Origin: Syncephalis fuscata S228
Taxonomy: Eukaryota > Fungi > Zoopagomycota
Assembly (NCBI GenBank): GCA_025786725.1
Contig: JAHLTZ010000033.1
Span: 1 to 64,000 of the forward strand
Direction of reading: 5' to 3'
Length of the DNA stretch: 64,000 bases
The position numbers and the translations under genes were made by a program. The notes below the pieces were generated by a model, which had not been told where the DNA came from, made no database searches, and was given only the letters and a program-made list of their open reading frames with translations. Shown one piece after another: positions 1,051 through 22,628 of the stretch. The stretch's first letter is position 1, and each line of letters begins with the position of its first letter.

Positions 1051-2526
1051 GGTTTCTAGTAGTGACGAATAAACTGTATTGACCCAATGATATTTACTGA
1101 GATATTTGTTGTAGAATATGTATAGCTGAATAGATGAGTAGTTGCAATGATAATGTTGCAAATAAGCACTTAACTGTGGTATTTATATACTAGTGTCTGC
1201 AAAATAAATTTTATTCAATACACACAATAACCGGATTGCTATTGGCATCAATGGTACACTTCAAAGTGACAATACATATTGTGCTAATCTGACGTCTGCA
1301 CTGGATTTAAATTAGGCCTATAGTTGCTTGAATTAGCATGCTTTAACAAATTAGAGCCGACCAAATTGCTATGTATCTATACTGATTGGTTTTCAAAACA
1401 GGTAAATGACAGCATCATAGCGATTGAAGCATTAGTACAAGGTATAGGTTAGCCGAGGGATAAAATCAACAAAATGATCTAGAACCATTACCTGTTTTTG
1501 TTGTTGGCAATTATACCGAACCAAGGCGGCGTTTTTCACTATTATTAGTTCCGTGCAAAGGGCCCATTTTTAATGTAGCAAAAATACATTCTATTTTTGT
1601 ACTTCTGCCAATTAGATTCTGATTCAATGTACATTGCTAAGGCCCATCATTGCCTTGTCGAAATTCAGCATTACTTTGAACTGTATAGATGATTTCAAGT
1701 TTTTAATCAATACACTATCAGGCTAGCAAATCATTTAATGAATTGAATTTTGCAAGTCACAGTAAAACTAGGTTATAGAAATTACTGATTACAGCACAGT
1801 ATCTAGAAATAAACAAACTTTTATATAGCCAATGCTACACAAATTCATACGGTTGCATAGCTGTTTTATTAAAATACTGTGTAAATGCAAAACAGCTCAG
1901 TTACCATCGGTAATCAAACATTCGATAGTGCTGTATACTGCAATGGCTTATATAGAGATGGCTATCTATAAATACTATGCAACTGTATAGAGTACTTATA
2001 AAACGAGCTAATCTGCAAATAGCAGTGGCAGTAAAAAGATATTGCCTTTGCTGCATACTATTATGAAAAAACAAGTACTATGTCTAGACCATTTTGGTGG
2101 ACATATTATCTAAATTGGATTAGGCCTTGGATTATCTATGTAGCTATCCTATGATAGCTTTACCTGATTGACAAAAACAAGTATAAGCAATATGTTAATT
2201 TCATTGGTTATAACTAGAATATAGTCTACTGTATGCAATGCACCAGCAATTCTTGATTTTGGTACGGTCTAGAATTGACTTGCTATAATGCAAATGGTTT
2301 ATCACAGTAACCTGCAATATTGCCGGATGGATGGCATAAAATTAATGTGAATGGTGGTGGATACTGGATATCTAAAAATTTACTATATAAATTACCACAG
2401 CTAAGTGCTTATTTGTAACATTATCATTGCAACTACTCATCTATTCAGCTATACATATTCTACCAACAAATATCTCAGTAAAATACCATTGGGTTTAATA
2501 CAGTTTATTCGTCACTACTAGAAACC

Positions 2527-3027
2527 ATGCAACTCTTACCAACTCTTGTCGCTGCTGCCCTGCTGGTCACTGCCATCCCAGCTTCACTTGGTGAAAACAT
2601 CAAGATTGTACCTGGATCGCCGACGTATAAAAATGCCTATGTTGGTGTAAAAGACAAATCGGGTGTAAAAGTGCCATTCGTACATTCAAATGACAAATCC
2701 GACAACAATAAATGGATAAGAACGGAAAATCCTAGAAACAAAGTCTACAGCCAGATCAAGCATAAGGCTGAAAACAAATGCCTTAGCTATAATATGGAAA
2801 GCCTGTCTATGGACACATGTGATGAAAAAAGCGTATTCCAAGCATGGAAGTTTTATACAAAAGAAGGCGACAATAGTTATAAGAACCGTTACAAAATCAT
2901 TCCAAAATTCTTCGATAAAAAATACGAAAAAAATGAAGTATGCTTACAGGTGAGCGGCGAGGACATTAAAGTTGAAGAATGTGACTATAGTCTACCAGAA
3001 CAATATTTTATAGTGTATCCTCTATAA
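2527..3027 (+). CDS. Secreted ricin B-type lectin-like protein, copy B, 166 aa
   Basis: Intact ORF differing from copy A at 2 residues (EEIK/ENIK, SPMY/SPTY). Confidence 0.8.
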   Translation: MQLLPTLVAAALLVTAIPASLGENIKIVPGSPTYKNAYVGVKDKSGVKVPFVHSNDKSDNNKWIRTENPRNKVYSQIKHKAENKCLSYNMESLSMDTCDEKSVFQAWKFYTKEGDNSYKNRYKIIPKFFDKKYEKNEVCLQVSGEDIKVEECDYSLPEQYFIVYPL

Positions 3028-3715
3028 AAGTTATTTATACGTAAATAAAAACAACTTTTACTTTATTTATGTTAACCAACCAAAATGCATGAACAATATT
3101 GTTAATTAAATTCGCACCAATAAAACGATCACCTATTGACAAAGACGCAATAACTATTACTATTGCTTTATCAGTCAATAAATTACTATGTCTCTATTGA
3201 GACTATGATGTATTAGTTTATTTCTCCCTATACACTATTTTTTAGTAAACCAATTTATTAAATAAAGCACGTACTTGTATATAAAAATGGTTTTATTAAT
3301 GCATACCCATCATATTTTGTTACTATAATTTAAAATTAAACATCGTGTATTCATCAATTGACGCAACTATAGTTCTTAAATAGTAAAAAAGTAATTGATA
3401 ATATAATAATTGATTATAGTACTGCGTTGACATTATAATCTAGGTTACGCCAAATTAAAGCACGACGCCAGTAGTTATAGTAGGCGGATAGTAATGCTTT
3501 AGTATTGAGTTTATACTGTACTAAAACTATTTATTTGAACAAAGCAATACTTGCTAATTACAATGAAATGGTCGGCTGTCACAAAAAGATATCTTGTAAG
3601 TAAATGTATTTATTAAATTTAATTCTTAATTTGCATAGAATCTTATAGCTAACAGTCTGCTGGTCGATGTGCTATTAATCCATACGACTATTGCCAATGT
3701 AATATGATTCTAAAA

Positions 3716-10044: not shown

Positions 10045-10487
10045 GATTCATCCTATTCGCAATTGTTATTATTATTATAACTAGGCGTGTGGATATTCTA
10101 GACTAATCTGCAGCCTGCGCAATGAGCGTGTGGTCGCGTATGAACAGACTGGGAATAAAGCGGCAAGAGAAAGCTACGGCACTGTCTAAGTTACTAGTTT
10201 GTAGAGCGGTATTTGTACACTCCGACAAATCAAATAATGATTGACAAAATCCTAGTTGTCTTCAGTTCTTCTCTAATCTATCATGTTCTTTTATAATAAA
10301 ATCATTATAAATAACCAGTAACTTTATCAATAAATATATTACTGCTATATGCAACATAAAAGTATTTTAATCTGTATTTGTTTGTTTATAATTATTATAT
10401 GTACAATACAGCTGTAGCAATAATGATGAAACCAAATAAAACAATCAAGTTATCAATTATCGTTACATAAACAACGTTAACCAATCT

Positions 10488-11056
10488 TAATTAGCTATTA
10501 TTAAATAATTGTCAGCATTAATTAACTAATTAATACACTTTTGATTATTAATTGTGTGGACACTGTATAAGAATGGCAAAAGAGAATTAATACAGTTTTT
10601 CAACAAATTAACCATTTTTCACCGATTTTTAATTCCATCAATAATATATCTAAAAATACGCAATACTATTCATTATGACCGCATGGCCTTGGCACATCAG
10701 CACATATAAGCTATATATTTTTGAAAAAGTATAGGAAGGTGATAATAATTAAAAGTGCTTAAAAATAGTATTTTTAATAATAATAATGTTATTTTTATTT
10801 ATAGTACTTTTTACGATTTTTAAAAATATATAGATTATATGTATCGATACGCAAAAACTATGCGGTCATAATGAATAGTATTGCGTATTTTTAGATATAT
10901 TATTGATGGAATTAAAAATCGGTGAAAAATGGTTAATTTGTTGAAAAACTGTATTAATTCTCTTTTGCCATTCTTATACAATGTCCACACAATTAATAAT
11001 CAAAAGTGTATTAATTAGTTAATTAATGCTGACAATTATTTAATAGTAGCTAATTA
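10488..11056. mobile_element. Young foldback/MITE-like element: ~197-bp near-perfect inverted arms (10488-10684, 10860-11056) with ~175-bp spacer
   Basis: TAATTAGCTATTATTAAATAATTGTCAGC...CATTATGACCGCAT mirrors ATGCGGTCATAATG...GCTGACAATTATTTAATAGTAGCTAATTA with only a few differences. Outermost bases are TA on both sides. Confidence 0.8.
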
Positions 11057-11269
11057 GTAATAGCTAATATACTTTTATTAACAGTTTTTGTTAATATTTA
11101 TTAGTTGCTTATGTCGTCTAACTAGTATTGCTGATATTATGTTCCACTTATTATTAACTATTAGTAGCAGACGACCATACATTACAATATTGGTACTAGT
11201 AAATACATAATGTTTATTGGCACTTGATTTAATTACAATCCAAAACAACGGCATTGATATTTATTATGT

Positions 11270-11834
11270 TGTTACGCTTCTAGTTTTAGAAATCGCAACT
11301 TAGATGACCAAGCAACACCTTATCCTGTCGCTATCCTATAACGCTAATTTCTGATGCTTATTAACGCTTACCTTAACGCTCAGAATACAATGTGTTATTT
11401 GGTTGTATTGCTTTTATAATAAAATTATTCCTTATTGGTCATTAATTACCACAGTTTAACTATAATAAACTGAATAACTTGTATGACACTAAGTAGAAAT
11501 AATATTGGACTAGAAACTTGATTATTTCTTTATTGATATTGAATAAAGCTATCATTATATAGTAAACATAACTAAATAGAACTGGAATGCCTTGTAGTAT
11601 TTCATCATTAGCGCAGCATATTAGTTCAGGTGACTGCTCATATGCTTACAACTAACAAGTAGCTACTCGTTATATTGTCGTAATAGCATTTGTTACTAGT
11701 AATCGGTACTAATATCCGATAGATATATTATTTTTGTGATCAATCACATGCGACTTTAACTGGTGACCCATCACACGATATATCACTTAGGCACACTTCC
11801 ACAAGACCCTGTCCGGAATATCAGAACAGTAACA
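11270..11834. mobile_element. Solo-LTR-like repeat, copy 1 (565 bp)
   Basis: Begins TGTTAC and ends GTAACA (TG...CA with 6-bp inverted termini). Direct repeat of 16645-17208. No adjacent PBS, PPT or gag-pol. Confidence 0.8.
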
Positions 11835-13694
11835 ACATGATGACGGGTGGTGTCGTATTAGTAGAGAATATGAGGGATGGTAGAGCGAAGTGACAATTGA
11901 GGATTAAACACTTAATATGATTGTTTACACTCCCATTTAGTAATACAGAAATGAAAAAAGTCTACTTGTTTATTAATGCTATTTAGTTTGTAGTAGTTAT
12001 AATAAACGTTCGGGCTTCGCCCCTAAATACCATTAGAACCACGCCCAATACCACAAGTAGAAATGATTGTTTGGTTATTTACCCATCACTTTATTCATCA
12101 ATGTTATGTTTATAGATAGCTGTTATTGATTGGTTGCTATCCTTTATGCTTGGCATTCTTTAAAGACAGTAAAATAGCATTGATTAATGGTTCTTTGTTG
12201 GATTAAATAGCCATTTACGTGTGAATTGTATAGACTTTATTGGTTGTTTTTAAACCGAATATCTTAGCTTGTACATCCTATAGTAATAAAGATTTAGTAA
12301 CTATAATTACAATATAATACTATGGAAATTAGAGAAATAGAATATTAATGCCAAATACTATTACTTTTGCTGTCTATTACTTTGCATTATTAATGCTTAG
12401 ATATGGATTTAACAATCATTAATTATTACTTAATACCTGGCAATGCTTAAATAAATTGTGTGCTATATTATAGATAAAATCAGAAGTATTTTATTGGTTA
12501 TTGCTATTTTAGAATATTATACCTGTATTATTAATGGCGCTAAAAGAATCTGGTAATAATCCGGTTTATTTTTATTAATATGTACTAAGCATAATTGGAT
12601 CAACACCAATAATACTATTATGGCCATGGGATGGGAGTCATATAATTGTCTCTACTATAGAATGCGACAACCATTCATTTCCTGTTTTGTAAAACAAAAA
12701 CTTGATTACAATTGCATTAATAATAATATGCTAATACAAACAGTAACATTGTTATAGCTATTAATATCATTAATGTACAACTTGAGGCTGCTAATATTGA
12801 TGGCAACTATATATAATTAATACGCACTCCTCCATTACTGATAATAATAGCTCAAATGAAACACTTATGCATAAACTATGCATTGTCCTTTTTCCTCACT
12901 CTCACCTTTTCATCCCTTCACTGTTGCCACCACCACTCCTTCCCTCGTCCACTAAGGCGGTGAAGGTAGCAAAAACGAAGTACTAGTCTTGTCGGGTCGT
13001 CAAAAATATTAGTCAAACATAATAAGTCCTTATTTTATTGTGCGCTCTTACCTAATGAAAATACATTGTCTTTGCAGGTCGTCTCATCGCATACCTAAGA
13101 ACCAACAGGTATCGTTGGTTAGAAGATAGATTATTTGATAACCACTGTTGTTGTTGATTGATAGCCGATGACATACAGTATCAGGCACAGCATAAGCGAT
13201 AGACCAGGCTTTGGCTGAGTGGAATTGTGGCCCATTTGACCATTCTGGTGTTTGAAAACATCACTGCCGTCAAGACGAATAAATAGCAATTTGCTTTTAA
13301 TTTCCCAATAGTTAATTCCTCATATTCACTCACTCACTCACTCACACTAGTCTCACTACTCACATTATTTACACTATTCACACTATTCACAGCATTTGAT
13401 TGAAATCGTGGCTCAAATTACAAGGTAAATATGGCAATGATGGTTATCTCTACTGGATACAGTGAATATCTATATTACTTTTATCGGTTGCTGAGGTTAA
13501 GTGACGCGTGTGGCTTGCCCTTTTCATATACCCGTTTATTCCGATCAATAAGCGCTCGCGCAATTCAAATGGGTGGTTGCACGCTCCGCACTTTTCTTTT
13601 TCTATACTCACCTCTTCTCCTTGCTTGTTTCGCACGATGACGTGTTCACTGCTTTTATTGCCTGTATACGGCTACCAATATCGCCGCGGTCCTC

Positions 13695-13701
13695 TATAAA
13701 A
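13695..13701 (+). promoter_or_regulatory. Candidate TATA box of the ODC-like gene
   Basis: TATAAAA followed by pyrimidine-rich sequence and ~850 nt containing only one ATG before the main start. Confidence 0.5.
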
Positions 13702-13945
13702 CGACCGCTACACACCTCACCGTTTGTTCTGCATTACCTTAACTTTACCTGATACCTTGTTTTATTCATACTTGCCTATTTCTACGGCAAACCAATCCAG
13801 CTTTCAATAACCAGTTGCAATACTTGACTCATATCGTTGATAACTCTACTTGCTCGTTGCTTCTCCTCACTCTTGTTCTTTATCCATTGGATCTACTGCT
13901 GTTACTTACTCTAGTAACATCGATACGAACAAACAAGCTGATTCC

Positions 13946-14029
13946 ATGCGTCGTTTGTCGAGTGATCGTTGTGCCGAGTCCAGCCGGCTTTTCATAAAAC
14001 CTTTTGTCGTGCATCCGACGGGACGCTAG
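13946..14029 (+). promoter_or_regulatory. AUG uORF (27 aa, MRRLSSDRCAESSRLFIKPFVVHPTGR) in weak context
   Basis: The only ATG between 13701 and 14546; context TCC-ATG-C. Confidence 0.45.
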
Positions 14030-14057
14030 ACCGACGTTGTCAGCGCCCACTAGCACC

Positions 14058-14177
14058 ACGGCCTCCGAAACCGCTAAGCAGTCCGTTGTTGTTGCGGTAG
14101 TGCCGGCTGCTATTGCTGCCTACCGGTACTTCTCTGGCCCTCCTCCCTGGCCCTGCTGCCGCTGCTTACACGCGTAA
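14058..14177 (+). promoter_or_regulatory. Non-AUG uORF with PPW motif (uCC-like): (M)ASETAKQSVVVAVVPAAIAAYRYFSGPPPWPCCRCLHA*
   Basis: Frame open 13998-14177 with no ATG. ACG at 14058 lies in ACC-ACG-G context. PPPW encoded at 14139-14150. Confidence 0.65.
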
Positions 14178-14546
14178 ACATACACGCTTGCCTACATTAA
14201 CTATCTTTTCTTTCCATTGCTTGCCTACTGACGTGGACTTGACGAAAGACCACTGCTTCACTACTGCTACTTCTTGCCTGCCGTTTTGCGCTTCGCATAC
14301 TATCGGCATAACTTGCACCTGCCCTAGCGGTCCACACACGTCTGCCTGCGTGTGTACGCTTGTTTGCGGGTACCTTTCTTCATATTCTATCTGACGGTGC
14401 TTATTGTGCGCAATCTACACCATTAATCATCGCCTACAATCTAACTATATTTCTATTACAATATCGCTGATTTTACTTTGATTGTTTTTGCAGGTATTAT
14501 TAGGATACCAGTCATTTAACCAAGAACTATTTTATTCGTTTTCAAG

Positions 14547-16259
14547 ATGCCTTTTGTTGAGGGAAGATTTTCATTGAACGCTGCTGAGGATGTTGAATCG
14601 ACCAACACATCTCATACTGCGACTGCAATTGTTGCTGCCAATGGTGGCATTGGCAAACAGTCGGTCTACATTGGCAACAATGCAGCCCAACTACCGATTA
14701 CTCCTCCTATTATGCCATTAGCCTTCGATGCGGCTACCAGTAACACTATTGATTTGTCAATGCCTATGGGCAATTTAGCTCCCCTTCCGGCCACGACGGC
14801 TTTGCTGTCAGCCCCACCACCACGTATGTCTGTTGATGATGCGTTGCGTCATCAGCTGGCCAACATCGAGTTTACTGGTGCCGAAGGTAATGCCTTTTTT
14901 ATTGCTGACGTGGCTCATTTACATAGACAGCACCAGACTTGGACAAATGAACTACCACAAGTTCATCCTTACTATGCAGTTAAATGCAATCCTTCGCCAC
15001 TAGTTATACAAACTCTAGCTTCATTGGGCGTTAACTTTGACTGTGCTTCAAAAATGGAAATCCAGTCTGTTTTAGAAGCTGGCGTGTCACCAGATCGCAT
15101 CATCTATGCCAATCCGTGCAAGCAACTGTCGCATATCCACTATGCAGTTGCTAATAATGTACGTATGATGACGTTTGATAACGCAGACGAACTTCATAAA
15201 ATGTATCGTGTTAATCGAGATATCAAAATGATTCTTCGTATTCTAGTCGATGATAGTAAGAGCTTCTGTCAATTAGGACTTAAGTTTGGCGCTCCTATGG
15301 AGTCGATTGAATCATTGTTGGCTGTAGCACGTGATCTTAATGTTCACTTGGCTGGCGTTAGTTTCCATGTAGGCAGTGGATGCTATGATGCCGAAGCCTT
15401 TGGCAGTGCTGTCCAGCGAGCCAAGACGGTCTTTGACTTGGCTCCGCTTTATGGACATAACGATATGCGTATTCTTGATGTTGGAGGCGGCTTTCCTGGC
15501 TCCAAGCTTGCCGATATTAAGTTTGAGCAAATTGCTGGTATATTACGTACCGCTCTTAGCGAATATTTCCCGATTGATTCGGGTATTCAGCTTATTGCCG
15601 AACCTGGCCGTTACTTTGTTGAAAATGCATTTACATTGGCCGTTAACGTTATTGCTCGACGTGTTATCTATGACGACAAGCCAGAAGGAGAGGATGGTGT
15701 GGTAACCGATAGTATGACCAACGATAACGGCAATAGCAAACCACCATCTTACATGTACTACATTAACGATAGCATGTACGGCTCATTCAACTGCATCATG
15801 TTCGATCATGTTATTATGAAGACACCGGGCCTATTGATGCATAAAGGCCAATTTCATGGCCGTGACCATCCACACCAACGTCCAGAGTATCTGGTCAACC
15901 GTGAGACGCCGACTTTGCCGCTTATAGGCTTCAGTGGCTCGAATGATGATAGTGTCGAACTGTCAACACCAAACGAGGCGATGTCGGTAGAAGGGGCACT
16001 TATGACCGCATCGCCAATGCCTCCCGGCTATCGCTGTAGCATTTGGGGTCACACTTTGGATTCAATTGACCGCATTAATCCACAATGCGTATTACCCGAA
16101 CTCCGTGTTGGTGACTGGCTACGCTACGACGGTATGGGTGCCTATACACTATGTGGAGCCTCTCAATTCAACGGCTTTAAGCAAAGTCGGGTCATCTACA
16201 TTGATACTACTGACACTTGCTCGCACACAGTAGCGACCGAGAGCGGCAACATTTACTAG
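14547..16259 (+). CDS. Ornithine decarboxylase homologue (PLP fold III, group IV) lacking the catalytic Cys360 equivalent
   Basis: YAVKCN, FDCAS, YANPCK, LKFGA, SFHVGSG, DVGGGFPG, AEPGRY, YGSFNC, GAYT and FNGF are present. WGPTCD reads WGHTLD. Confidence 0.93.
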   Translation: MPFVEGRFSLNAAEDVESTNTSHTATAIVAANGGIGKQSVYIGNNAAQLPITPPIMPLAFDAATSNTIDLSMPMGNLAPLPATTALLSAPPPRMSVDDALRHQLANIEFTGAEGNAFFIADVAHLHRQHQTWTNELPQVHPYYAVKCNPSPLVIQTLASLGVNFDCASKMEIQSVLEAGVSPDRIIYANPCKQLSHIHYAVANNVRMMTFDNADELHKMYRVNRDIKMILRILVDDSKSFCQLGLKFGAPMESIESLLAVARDLNVHLAGVSFHVGSGCYDAEAFGSAVQRAKTVFDLAPLYGHNDMRILDVGGGFPGSKLADIKFEQIAGILRTALSEYFPIDSGIQLIAEPGRYFVENAFTLAVNVIARRVIYDDKPEGEDGVVTDSMTNDNGNSKPPSYMYYINDSMYGSFNCIMFDHVIMKTPGLLMHKGQFHGRDHPHQRPEYLVNRETPTLPLIGFSGSNDDSVELSTPNEAMSVEGALMTASPMPPGYRCSIWGHTLDSIDRINPQCVLPELRVGDWLRYDGMGAYTLCGASQFNGFKQSRVIYIDTTDTCSHTVATESGNIY

Positions 16260-16644
16260 TACGTTTAGAACAATACTACGTTGGCTGCCTTAATTTTTGA
16301 CCAATATTTTTATGCAAATCCATACATGAATAAAGCATGTGATTATAATATTAAGTTTCTATTGTTTCTACAAACACGTTCTTTATTACTTTTATTGGAA
16401 AGAAAAGGGAAACAGCTATTGTACAACCATGTATAGTGGTCATTGAAGTTAACATGACGTTATTACCTGTGTATTCAAGTGACAATAATAACAGCAAATA
16501 GACAATAGGCATTGAATACATTACACTTATTAGATGGATTGAAGTAACATTTTATTTAGCCATCACATCATCACATTTATTGTTTGTTTGGTTGTCAAAT
16601 GAGCAACATTTACATACTTGAACTGCACATTTGTTTATTGACAT

Positions 16645-17208
16645 TGTTACGCTTCTAGTTTTAGAAATCGCAACTTAGATGACCAAGCAACACCTTTCCT
16701 GTTGCTATCCTATAACGCTAATTTCTGATGCTTATTAACGCTTACCTTAACGCTCAGAATACAATGTGTTATTTGGTTGTATTGCTTTTATAATAAAATT
16801 ATTCCTTATTGGTCATTAATTACCACAGTTTAACTATAATAAACTGAATAACTTGTATGACACTAAGTAGAAATAATATTGGACTAGAAACTTGATTATT
16901 CTTTATTGATATTGAATAAAGCTATCATTATATAGTAAACATAACTAGTAATAGAACTTGAATGCCTTGTAGTATTTCATCATTAGCGCAGCATATTAGT
17001 TCAGGGACTGCTCATATGCTTACAACTAACAAGTAGCTACTCGTTATATTGTCGTAATAGCATTTGTTACTAGTAATCGGTACTAATATCCGATAGATAT
17101 ATTATTTTTGTGATCAATCACATGCGACTTTAACTGGTGACCCATCACACGATATATCACTTAGGCACACTTCCACAAGACCCTGTCCGGAATATCAGAA
17201 CAGTAACA
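16645..17208. mobile_element. Solo-LTR-like repeat, copy 2 (564 bp)
   Basis: TGTTAC...GTAACA; differs from copy 1 at only a handful of positions by eye. Confidence 0.8.
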
Positions 17209-17482: not shown

Positions 17483-18252
17483 AAAATGTGATTTATGAGC
17501 ATTTTGTGTATGTTTTGCTAGTAGTATTATCTTTAAACTTTTAATGCTATACAATTTATTTACTTGCCTGGATCAATAACTAGTGGCTGTATTGATGTAA
17601 AAGCAATTATACTCCAAATTATCAAGTTTGGCTTTGCTTTTTAAAACTGGCAATAAATTGTGTTGTTTTATATAAAACAAAATAAAAGCTCAGTTATTGT
17701 AATATTAATGTAATTCTGTACAAATCAGATCGAAGTCAAGGAATTACAAAAATGGGGCAAATAGATCATTAGCTCAAATGACAACCAAAAATAGCTACAA
17801 TATATCTATGAAACAACAGTGCATATTTGTGTTTTATAATTACACCAATCATACTTGACAAAGCGTAAATTTTAAATAGCCAAATGCAAATAGCATATGT
17901 AAAATAATCTACTATACAAATCACTAACAAACATAAAGATATAATTACTTACTGATTGCACTACATCTTATAAAGCAGCTAATTATAAATTTAAAGCACA
18001 TTAATTATTATAAATGTAATAAATTAATATTTAAAATCATTTGTATTTATTCTGTTATTTATATAAAACAACACAATTTATTGCCAGTTTTAAAAAGTAA
18101 AGCCAAACTTGATAATTTGGAATGTAATCGCTTTTACAGCAACACAGCCGCTAGTTGTTGAATTAAGCCGGTACAGAAACTGTGTAGTGTTACAAGTTTA
18201 CAGATAATATTTATGGCAGAATCATACACAGAATGCCTCTAAATCACACTTT
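17483..18252. mobile_element. Diverged foldback/MITE-like element; arms ~17483-17686 and ~18047-18252
   Basis: CCAAATTATCAAGTTTGGCTTTGCTTTTTAAAACTGGCAATAAATTGTGTTGTTTTATATAAA mirrors 18058-18120 almost exactly. Outer parts match with more substitutions. Confidence 0.75.
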
Positions 18253-18529
18253 ATAATTGCTTAATATGGAATGTTACATATATTTTTAGATAGCGTTTCA
18301 AATGATAGTCAAATCATCCTTTGCAGGAATTATAAACAGGTAATTGTTACAGTAATACCGGTTGCATTGAGAACTGTTACATATTACAATTCAATTGCTT
18401 GTCCAATATCCTATTTAAATAAAGCAACAGTTTTTAATTTGCAAAACAACAACTCACTACCAACTACCATTAGGATTATTGATTAATCTATACTTTCGTA
18501 TCTTTAATATTCATTTAATTGTACCCACA

Positions 18530-21172
18530 ATGCATTCATCACTTTCTAAGCTACTTTTTGTGCTGGCACTAGCAATCAAATTGAATTTGCCTACTACAAG
18601 TAAGTCTTAAAACTTAAATACTATGTTTTATTGTAATTATTAACATGTACCGAATACTAGATAATTCTGGTAAAAACAATGGCTTAATTTTCGCAAAAGC
18701 TACGCCGCTTGATCTTGGCAATTCAATTCAATCCATCGTAGCAACAATTTCTGATACCGGTAATAAGGCTTTACCTGCCTTGAAGTCAGTAATTCCACTT
18801 GGGTCTACCAAGTCAAAGCAAGCTGCATCGGCAAGAAACACACCTTCAAAGTCAGGCCAGATCGATTGGGAATATCCTATTGTACGTCGTGACCAGTCTG
18901 TTGTCGAGACCATTCATGGCTATAAGATTGCCGATCCATACCGGTGGCTGGAAGATACTAAAAGCAATGAGACTAAGGTTAGATTTAGTCTAATTAGCTT
19001 TTAATAAAACTAACAAATAACTAGGCATTTGTCAAGGACCAGAACAAACTGACAGACTCTTACTTAAGCCGAAATAGCCAGCGCGATGCTTATACAAGCG
19101 CGTAGGTAGCATTAAATGCATTAGCAAAATAGCTATTAATTATCTATTGCATTATTAGAGTTACTAAACTATATGGCAGCGACTGGATGAGCACTCCAAT
19201 GAAAGCTGGCAATTATTACTTTACTTTTTATCAATATAATCTAGATAATCAAAGTATTTTGTATAAGCAGAAGTCATTGGATGCTGAAAAGACGGTCTTT
19301 CTTGATCCAAACCAGTGGGACAAGAATGGTGCTTTTTTTATCAATCAATACTTATTTTCTGATTCCGGAAAATATTTTGGCTATATTATTAGGAAAAGCG
19401 GCAGCGACTGGGGCACCATACGCGTACGTTGTGTTGAAGACAGCCCAAATTGCAAGGCTGGCCAGGATGCAATTGATGAAGTCAAGTGGACCAAGTTCTT
19501 CAACATTGCCTGGTCCCACGATGAGCTCGGCTTTTTTACACAGTAAGTTATAGCTATTATCCACATTGTTTATATTTATTTATTACAATTGATTAGCGTT
19601 ATCCAGAACCAAGTGGTAGCGACAAAGATACTGCACCGAGACAAGCAGCAGTGAAAATGCTAAAGTTTACTACCATCGTCTTGGTACACAACAGTCGAGC
19701 GATCAACTAATTGCTGAATATCCTGAAACTCCTACATATGACGTATTCGCTTCGACAAGCAATGATGGCCGCTGGCTAGTGGTAAAGTTACTGATAATAG
19801 TAGTAACGAAAAGGTATGGCTGGCTCGTATGGGTGAAGATGGAAGTGTGCCCAAAAATATTACATTAACAAGGTAGTGAATGATATGAATGGCTATTATA
19901 ATTAGTAGGTGACAATATACATATAGTTAATTTAGCTAAATCAATTTTATAGCATTGGCAATGCTGGAGATCGCTTTTATTTTAGTTCTGACAAGAATGC
20001 TCCTCGTTCTAAAGTTATTACATATGACATGGCAGCTCCAGAAAAGGGATTCATCGATTTGATTCCTCAGCATGGAAAAGACATTTTGAATAATGCATAT
20101 ATTGTAGAAGGTGATTATCTCTTGCTTGAATACATGAAAGATGTAAAAAGTGCTTTATCGATCCATCAGCTTAGCACTGGCAAAAAAATCCGTGATATAC
20201 CATTGCCTATTGGCTCAGTGAGCGACATTACAGCATATTCCAAACATACCGAAATATTCTTTTAATGAACTCTTTTTTAAGTCAAGGTACCATTTACCGT
20301 TATGACGTTAAATCAGATACACTATCTGTGGTAAATGAATTGAAAACGCCTGGATTCAATCCCGAGGAATTTGAAACACGCCAGGTATTGTTAAAGCAAA
20401 GACAGCGTAGAGTTTCCTATGTTATTACAGCACGCAAAGGAATTTCACTCGACAAAAGTCACCCAACTATTTTATTTAGTGACGGCAGTTTCTCTTATTC
20501 ACAAATGCCACAATTCAATACGCTATGGGGTGCTTTCCTCAAACATTTTAATGGCATTGTGGCTGTCGCGAATATACGCGGTGGTGGCGAATACGGCACC
20601 GAGTGGCATAAAAATGGTATGTTACAAAAGAAGCAAAACACTTTTGACGACTTCCAAAGTGCCGCCAAATATCTTTCTGAGCAAGGCTACACCAAACCGT
20701 CATTGCTAACACTTCAAGGTGACGGTGCTGGCGGCTTACTAGTTACCGCCACTGCTAATCAGGCGCCCGAATTGTTCGGATGCGGTCTAGCCAATTATGG
20801 TCTTACGGATATGCTACGATTTCACAAGTTTTCCGTTGGAGGTGCCTGGACAACGGAATTTGGCAATCCTGATGTTAAAAGTGATTTTGAATATTTATTA
20901 CGGTATTCTCCATTACACAATGCCAATGCCAACAAAACTTATCCAGCACTACTTTTAACACGCCAGATCAATTGGACCGTATATCACCATTAAATTCATA
21001 CAAGTTAGCTGCTGAACTTCAATATAAACTACCAAAGAATCCCAATCCACTGATGCTTCGTATTATTGAAAATTATGAAGTTGATGGAGAATCAACAACG
21101 GCTTGGATTACTCAAGTTGTGGATAGGCTTTCATTTATGGCAATATCTCTTAATCTAAAATGGCATGATTAA
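18530..21172 (+). CDS. Prolyl oligopeptidase (S9A) homologue with putative signal peptide and no catalytic triad; multi-exon, several apparent frameshifts
   Basis: YPIVRRD, IADPYRWLED, SGSDW, WTKF, ANIRGGGEYG, KKQNTFDDF, DMLRFHKF and YSPLHN. First exon MHSSLSKLLFVLALAIKLNLPTT followed by GTAAGT. Confidence 0.88.
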
Positions 21173-22628
21173 GTAATAATCAAATGATTATCAAAATTAA
21201 TAAACACCGTTTAAATATAGCTGCTTATTATTTGATTAATAAGATGAAACTATTACAACGCAAATACAAGTGTATCATATTAAATTATACTAAATTGTAT
21301 TGTTTTTTAAATGTTATAGCATTCATTTTTACTATTTGGATATTCAATAACTTGGTGTTAAAGCTTAGCTATATCGATTACCAAATTGGCAATCCGGATT
21401 AATCACCAATACTATTATCATATGATTTGCATCGAATTATCAATACACTGTCGTGAATAAAACAACTGAATAATTAATAAAATAAAATAGAGATTAATAT
21501 TTTATTATAAGATGGGCAAATCATGTATGTATTTATAGTGAGCGTGTGCTACACAAGTATCTTAATATATTTATGACGAGCAATCTAAGAGATATTCTTA
21601 TTTTTAGACTCACGACAACGGTAATTATTTAATAATAGCTAATTACAGTTTGCTAACATAATTCATGTAAAAGTGATTAATTATCAGTAATTAATGTCAA
21701 GTAGCTAATTGTATTAAATAACTAATCATTGCTTTAATGCATTTTCAATTAGTAAATTGACTAACAATTCTAATACGAACTAATCAGCCAGCTATTAATT
21801 AAACAACACTACTGATATTAAATATTATATGTGCTAGACAGGCGAATAACTAGTATATAAAAGCACTTTAAATAAAAGCTACTACAATAATATGAGTATT
21901 GAATTAAATGCAATATATAGATGGGTTAGAAATGTTGTATATTATTTACTATAGAAGAATCATGGTGCATTTCTACAGCTAGTTGATCATAATTGCAAAG
22001 TATAAATACATTAACAATAATATTTATGAACCATTTCTTTAATTGCTTTGTTTATATCTATTATTATTAATCAGCCTATTAGTTAACAGTTTAATATAAT
22101 TTGGTGCCAAATAATTATGTTTATAATATTTACACGATTGCATTAGACATTTATTCTAGTAAATATAAGGCTGAAGTGATAAACAATATTAATATAGATT
22201 TTGATTCAGTTCACTGTTTGTATGTGCGTATACGTCTACACACTACAATTTCATTGCAAGTATTTATACATTTACTTGGTTATTTATTTGAATTTATATA
22301 ACTATAATAGAAGCTACAATTCATGCAAATAAAACAAATAAAATAGCAATAATTTGAACGCGCAATCTACGCTAGGTCATGACTCCGATACTGGTTACAC
22401 TTGACATATTCTCACAAAACTACAAACCATTGGCCATATATCGTTGCGGCCTTAGCCATAACAAATTTCCAAAGTTATTGTTTTTGATATTCAAAATACT
22501 TATAGGCTTCGTAAACAAACTTTTTATTTATTTCATATAACTAACAAAAGCAGACAATAAGAGCGTGGCAGAACATAGCAAAACTAATATTGTTTATTAT
22601 AGTCACTAAAGTTATTGCAGCAATAACA

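Follow-up and report, generated by a model that had tools for sequence, protein, structure and literature searches.

The window (the whole stretch of 64,000 nucleotides from Syncephalis fuscata S228 analysed here) contains an intronless open reading frame homologous to ornithine decarboxylase (ODC), which lies, with its leader and promoter, in a 4.55-kb duplicated segment bracketed by two near-identical solo LTRs (Table 1). The preliminary description, made from the bare sequence, held that this ODC paralogue is undamaged over 570 aa, that its PLP lysine K146 and other active-site motifs are intact, and that WGHTLDSID and NDSMYG stand in place of the cysteine motif and of NDGVYG, respectively. 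All of this was confirmed: no stop or frameshift interrupts the frame, PLP-side and substrate residues are otherwise kept in the alignment, and both altered motifs are present in the assembly. The list of altered motifs was nevertheless incomplete, as A393G (codon 537) had been overlooked.

Table 1. Features of the ODC copy and its surroundings (positions in the window; residues in human numbering unless stated otherwise).
Feature	Position	Strand	Remarks
Solo-LTR-type repeat 1, 565 bp, TGTTAC...GTAACA	11270..11834	+	left flank ATGT, right flank ACAT
Spacer between repeat 1 and the segment, 220 bp	11835..12054	+	16/18 match to an old foldback repeat family over its first 18 nt
Duplicated segment: upstream DNA, promoter, leader, CDS, 3' end	12055..16605	+	94.7% identical to G000:C339:276126-280725
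Upstream AUG, window copy only (parent TTG)	13946..14029	+	opens a 27-codon out-of-frame uORF; leader comparison
Non-AUG upstream conserved coding region ending PPPWPCCRCLHA-stop	13998..14177	+	PPPW at 14139-14150; shared C-terminus
ODC-homologous ORF of the window copy	14547..16259	+	intronless, 570 aa; recent copy of the ODC at G000:C339:278674-280385
PLP-binding lysine K146 of the copy (human K69), intact	14982..14984	+	translation, homologue alignment
G321S in NDSMYG, window copy only	15771..15773	+	G in 121/121 homologues and parent
Catalytic loop WGHTLDSID: P358H (16050-16052), C360L (16056-16058)	16044..16070	+	parent WGPTCDSID
A393G (codon 537), window copy only	16155..16157	+	A in 120/121 homologues and parent
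Solo-LTR-type repeat 2	16645..17208	+	left flank ACAT, right flank GTGT; 2 substitutions from repeat 1

The encoded protein has the ODC fold, matching Pfam PF02784 and PF00278 and retaining the barrel and sheet domains in its AlphaFold model (pTM 0.73). Among solved structures, human and mouse ODC are the top matches (E 2e-120; 406 bits for human ODC), whereas AZIN1, which binds antizyme more tightly than ODC does, is matched far more weakly (E 2e-85, 291 bits). In human numbering, K69, D88, E94, K115, D134, R154, K169, H197, S200, G235-237, E274, R277, Y323, D332, D361, D364, G387, Y389, F397 and N398 are all intact, and these include the complete PLP-binding set of active ODC (K69, H197, G235-237, E274, R277, Y389).

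The catalytic C360 of the GPTCD motif is absent from the copy, for which the assembly reads GHTLD. Among 176 homologous proteins, the motif is PTC in 175 and PSC in one; in 79 of 80 metagenome loci it is PTC or ATC, and the remaining locus has no motif match, so that the cysteine is present in every readable motif of both sets. In the second altered motif, codons 15765-15782 encode N-D-S-M-Y-G, compared to NDGMYG in the parent gene described below. Four changes of the copy thus fall at invariant columns (G321S, P358H, C360L and A393G), and in having C360L together with three neighbouring invariant positions changed, the copy fits the substitution of catalytic residues expected of an antizyme inhibitor.

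As read from the assembly, the Leu codon in place of C360 is probably genuine. The copy and the parent differ by 60 substitutions in the CDS, 51 of them transitions and nine transversions, and hence the differences represent real divergence rather than long-read error. There is a slight chance that TTG is a consensus artefact (one T added in a T run and one C lost) and that the copy truly retains the cysteine: near-identical repeat pairs in the assembly show 4-7 one-bp gaps per 0.6-1.7 kb, and three of the nine transversions sit within the 9 nt at issue. However, an artefact would require two compensating errors within 3 nt, making the number of events no smaller; P358H, G321S and A393G are separate substitutions, and the adjoining changes are synonymous transitions. 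The catalytic loop as a whole has five base differences in 13 nt (simulation, P = 0.023).

The genome search yielded three ODC-like genes and an antizyme gene, so the window gene is not the sole ODC homologue, and both a second, Cys-intact ODC and antizyme are present along with it. The closest of these genes, the parent (G000:C339:278674-280385), keeps WGPTCDSID and is 96.5% identical to the window CDS (94% at the protein level, 34 differing residues), which supports the status of the window gene as an ODC paralogue, with the cysteine lost in the window copy only. The parent sequence in the assembly is one base short at codon 288 (C339:279536; window equivalent 15410), and we read its CDS through this break using N/X. 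A programmed frameshift was considered for this site and rejected, as no slippery sequence was seen there. Since the parent has no changes at invariant columns, and since one-bp gaps are frequent between near-identical repeats here, the deletion is probably an assembly error. If it were real, neither of the two close copies would make a canonical ODC, and the fungus would have to use the divergent third gene or polyamines of its host, being itself without an intact canonical ODC. Such a situation would be in line with the site lying outside any homopolymer, with the nearest named relative being a Zoopagales parasite, and with the third gene retaining K69, C360 and D361; still, we consider it very unlikely, given the spared invariant columns, the omega of 0.26 on the parent branch and the frequency of one-bp gaps.

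The third ODC-like gene (G000:C339:241402-243.6k; L004:639-2906) encodes 636 aa in a five-intron structure, is about 40% identical, and has K69, C360 and D361 intact along with S200C, K294Q, Y331I and a long, acidic N-terminus. In the tree it stands on a long branch, apart from the main set of fungal ODCs. It may act on another substrate. The antizyme gene, with the GUU-UGA-C +1 shift site, was found on two contigs (L008:1069-1782 on G000:C54, and L009 on C179) that are 99.7% identical across 3.2 kb and are likely haplotigs.

The neighbours of the Thamnocephalis ODC gene, an upstream Pro-rich gene and a downstream patatin gene, match those on C339 and nothing in the window, and similarity between the window and C339 is limited to 12055-16605. 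Thus, by synteny, C339 is the ancestral ODC locus, and the window gene is a displaced copy rather than an allele. A haplotig was likewise ruled out, as similarity does not extend beyond 12055 and 16605 and the genes on either side are not the same.

The two LTRs flanking the segment are only two substitutions apart, while at least 26 separate them from any other copy of the family. This 565-bp family has at least 40 genomic copies; a perfect 4-bp target-site duplication was seen in 13 of the 30 inspected. The family matched by the first 18 nt of the spacer is the one interrupted by repeat 2, and it includes the parent locus, 25 nt past the right end of the segment. Thus, the spacer appears to continue the sequence that repeat 2 interrupts. 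The remainder of the spacer showed no significant similarity in the alignment test, and no close donor of the spacer was found in the assembly.

We considered whether the copy could have been produced by LTR-mediated retrocopying, and rejected this. The inner flanks of the repeats are identical (ACAT/ACAT), but the outer ones are not (ATGT/GTGT), hence there is no outer target-site duplication, and the insert is not bounded as an mRNA, since it reaches 1.6 kb beyond the TATA box on the upstream side. A retrocopy would also be expected to have a primer-binding site and polypurine tract inside the LTRs. Alternatively, a DNA circle carrying an LTR could have recombined into a resident LTR, depositing the ODC segment. 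We favour this re-integration as the explanation of the LTR-bracketed layout, with restraint, because one outer flank is mismatched, the spacer has no close donor, and similarity of the rest of the spacer is not significant. Gene duplication through extrachromosomal circles (PMC7188851) is similar in giving a dispersed copy with permuted junctions; here, in contrast, the entry would be by LTR-LTR recombination, as deduced from the swapped 4-bp flanks, and the mismatched flank and the spacer lacking a close donor in the assembly set our case apart.

In the tree, the window copy and the parent form a sister pair (support 99), the branch of the copy (0.044) being about five times longer than that of the parent (0.008-0.009). 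There are 35 non-synonymous codons between them, one of which is the break in the parent, and 17 synonymous ones. When polarised by outgroups, 18-20 amino-acid changes are assigned to the copy and 6-7 to the parent. Under a codon model for 364 core codons, omega was 0.90-0.96 for the copy, 0.26 for the parent and 0.05 for the outgroups; for the copy, omega = 1 was not rejected (P = 0.91), whereas equality with the background was (2dlnL = 30). The difference in omega between the copy and the parent has P = 0.018 if their synonymous branch lengths are set equal, and P = 0.5 in the free model.

If the copy had lost all constraint, its changes should hit invariant columns at the neutral rate. Over the whole protein, 4 of 20 changes do so, with 5.7 expected (P = 0.29), as neutrality predicts, and the ratio of synonymous to non-synonymous changes does not differ between the barrel and the C-terminal tract (P = 0.49). 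All four hits are in the C-terminal domain, with none among 100 invariant barrel columns (Fisher P = 0.077), and in the diverged barrel tract, where pN/pS is 0.30, none of 6-9 changes falls at an invariant column (P = 0.008-0.03, post hoc). For a neutral copy, the chance of remaining free of stop codons is 41-55%, and real indels would lower this figure further. We also observed an excess of double-hit codons between the copies, nine in total. Thus, the intact ORF and uORF, the barrel tract spared at invariant columns and the double-hit codons are points against relaxed selection.

Synonymous divergence between the two genes is a mosaic: codons 1-148 and 227-373 have diverged by 1%, the others by 11% (P = 1e-5), which suggests gene conversion or cross-polishing. 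Either process would distort all of the rate estimates given above and, owing to this mosaic, the apparent conservation of the leader is uninformative. At codons 33-34 (window 14637-14654), the difference between copy and parent is a 6-bp micro-inversion within a short inverted repeat, GCCAAT...ATTGGC.

An old conserved paralogue was ruled out as the origin of the window gene. Nothing closer than 61% turned up among the collected proteins, and none of the databases searched (proteins, metagenome loci) yielded a relative lacking the cysteine. The copy does not behave as a conserved lineage, since a Cys-less orthologue was not found and its omega, about 0.9, is indistinguishable from 1.

In the leader, the uORF with a non-AUG start has its stop nine codons past PPPW, and its region differs between the copy and the parent at one position in 183 nt. 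The same C-terminus is found upstream of ODC in the parent, in Thamnocephalis (L021) and in a metagenome relative (L020), all of which encode Cys-intact enzymes. Thus, the uORF does not point to an antizyme inhibitor, and the earlier argument that it fits such a role falls; from this distribution, the PPPW uORF is ancestral and marks ODC homologues generally, not inhibitors. Upstream reading frames of the uCC type (non-AUG, Pro-Pro) have been described in Pezizomycotina, Basidiomycota and Zygomycota, where they accompany ODC homologues (PMC2811004). The present uORF resembles them in being a non-AUG region with adjacent prolines near the end, and differs in the conserved tail PCCRCLHA that comes after PPPW. 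Zoopagales-like ODCs whose proteins are 60-65% identical show strong conservation of this uORF tail, PPPW[PL]CCRCLHA-stop. Apart from the new AUG of the window copy, its leader is free of AUG, and neither the parent nor the L020 leader contains any ATG.

The active site of ODC is composite, PLP/K69 being contributed by one monomer and C360/D361 by its partner (PMC4595762), and C360 both participates in the catalytic cycle and is the site of the DFMO adduct (PMC11912471). As C360 is supplied by the second monomer, a homodimer of the window copy would have no cysteine at either site, and little decarboxylase activity would be expected. If translated, the copy would fold, bind PLP and pair with the parent enzyme; as the literature search returned no C360A/K69A complementation papers, we only infer that such a heterodimer would retain one complete active site. 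The copy is the same as the parent at all 14 positions mapped by contact or affinity from the human ODC-antizyme complex (PMC4595762), so that, if expressed, it should bind antizyme as the parent does and soak some of it up. It would then act at most like a weak inhibitor by default, as a side effect of redundancy rather than as a selected regulator.

The copy might also have kept some enzymatic function, either weak or altered, on another substrate or in a side reaction. K69, H197, E274, R277, D332 and D361 are intact, the changes are grouped around the substrate site, and ODC paralogues with shifted substrate preference are known (Xenopus AZIN2/ODC2, PMC6738921). However, paralogues of the latter type retain C360, every homologue with a readable motif has the cysteine, and the core shows no signal of purifying selection; we regard this possibility as improbable. 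From eukaryotic ODCs, of which the nearest named one is that of Thamnocephalis sphaerospora (RKP08662.1), the copy differs by C360L, P358H, G321S, A393G, its displaced locus and faster evolution, whereas the fold, the PLP lysine, nearly all key residues and the non-AUG PPPW uORF are shared; its identity to Zoopagales-like ODCs is 60-66%.

We favour, though not strongly, the view that the window gene arose recently by duplication of ODC, sits between LTRs and evolves under relaxed selection, serving at most as a passive sink for antizyme. A canonical ODC gene would have been duplicated at the DNA level, with promoter and leader, to a new site between solo LTRs, probably as a re-integrated DNA circle, and the displaced copy would then have been freed from purifying selection. 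This rests on the syntenic parent, the long branch of the copy, its omega near 1, the new AUG and the lack of Cys-less relatives.

The preliminary description had suggested an inactive or repurposed ODC paralogue and, as a possibility, an independently evolved fungal antizyme inhibitor. In the latter case selection would keep a nascent inhibitor or ODC modulator whose role is to sequester antizyme at low polyamine levels. An inhibitor would then be seen at birth in an early-diverging fungus, arisen from an LTR-mobilised ODC copy with catalysis lost and with the antizyme-binding barrel and the polyamine-sensing uORF selected. The confinement of all four invariant-site changes to the C-terminal domain near the substrate site, with 0/100 invariant barrel columns affected, would agree with this, as would the intact ORF, uORF and promoter region, and the antizyme gene with its GUU-UGA +1 site in the same genome. 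ODC paralogues of doubtful catalytic competence have arisen repeatedly among eukaryotes (Ivanov et al. 2010, as cited in PMC5574924), so the transition itself has precedents. Yet the copy is very young and occurs in one genome only; no Cys-less relative exists among the sequences searched, and dN/dS is about 1; its antizyme contacts are those of the parent; K69 and the checked dimer residues are intact, while AZINs lose several key residues (PMC3543441, PMC6738921); the uORF is ancestral and an upstream AUG has been gained; and the low divergence of the leader is explained by the homogenised tracts. The inhibitor proposal is therefore not supported, and selection for such a function seems unlikely.

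AZIN1, AZIN2 and the putative inactive ODC paralogues (Ivanov, Firth, Atkins 2010, PMID 20217058, as cited in PMC5574924 and PMC3543441) resemble the copy in the damaged active site and in the presence of Cys-intact ODC and antizyme in the genome. They belong to ancient, conserved lineages in which several key residues have typically changed, whereas the window copy is confined to one species and has one canonical catalytic residue altered. The literature search found no experimentally characterised fungal antizyme inhibitor. Ascomycota candidates are reportedly among the putative inactive ODC paralogues in Ivanov's 2010 work.

Should the copy be doing no more than decay, it would amount to a commonplace recent duplication, of use chiefly as a clear illustration of how genes can move in association with LTRs. 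Were it expressed and able to buffer antizyme, it would capture the opening stage in the evolution of an antizyme inhibitor from ODC. With only 34 residue differences between the two proteins, this question is open to direct testing, and were the inhibitor reading true, the 96.5%-identical active parent in the same genome would serve as a built-in control.

Other repeats were also observed. Of the 30 copies of the 565-bp LTR inspected (L023-L052), 17 have no matching target-site duplication, and several have one flank in common, which suggests that LTR-LTR recombination is frequent in this genome. The LTR pair around the ODC segment is closely flanked on either side by a foldback element with long inverted arms (window 10450-11094 and 17483-18252). 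A prolyl oligopeptidase-family gene (18055-21446) has four or more dispersed copies, which are 86-98% identical; in the closest, seven one-bp gaps occur in 1.7 kb. Finally, an inverted duplication of 746 bp (451-1192 / 2381-3126) is 97.7% identical.
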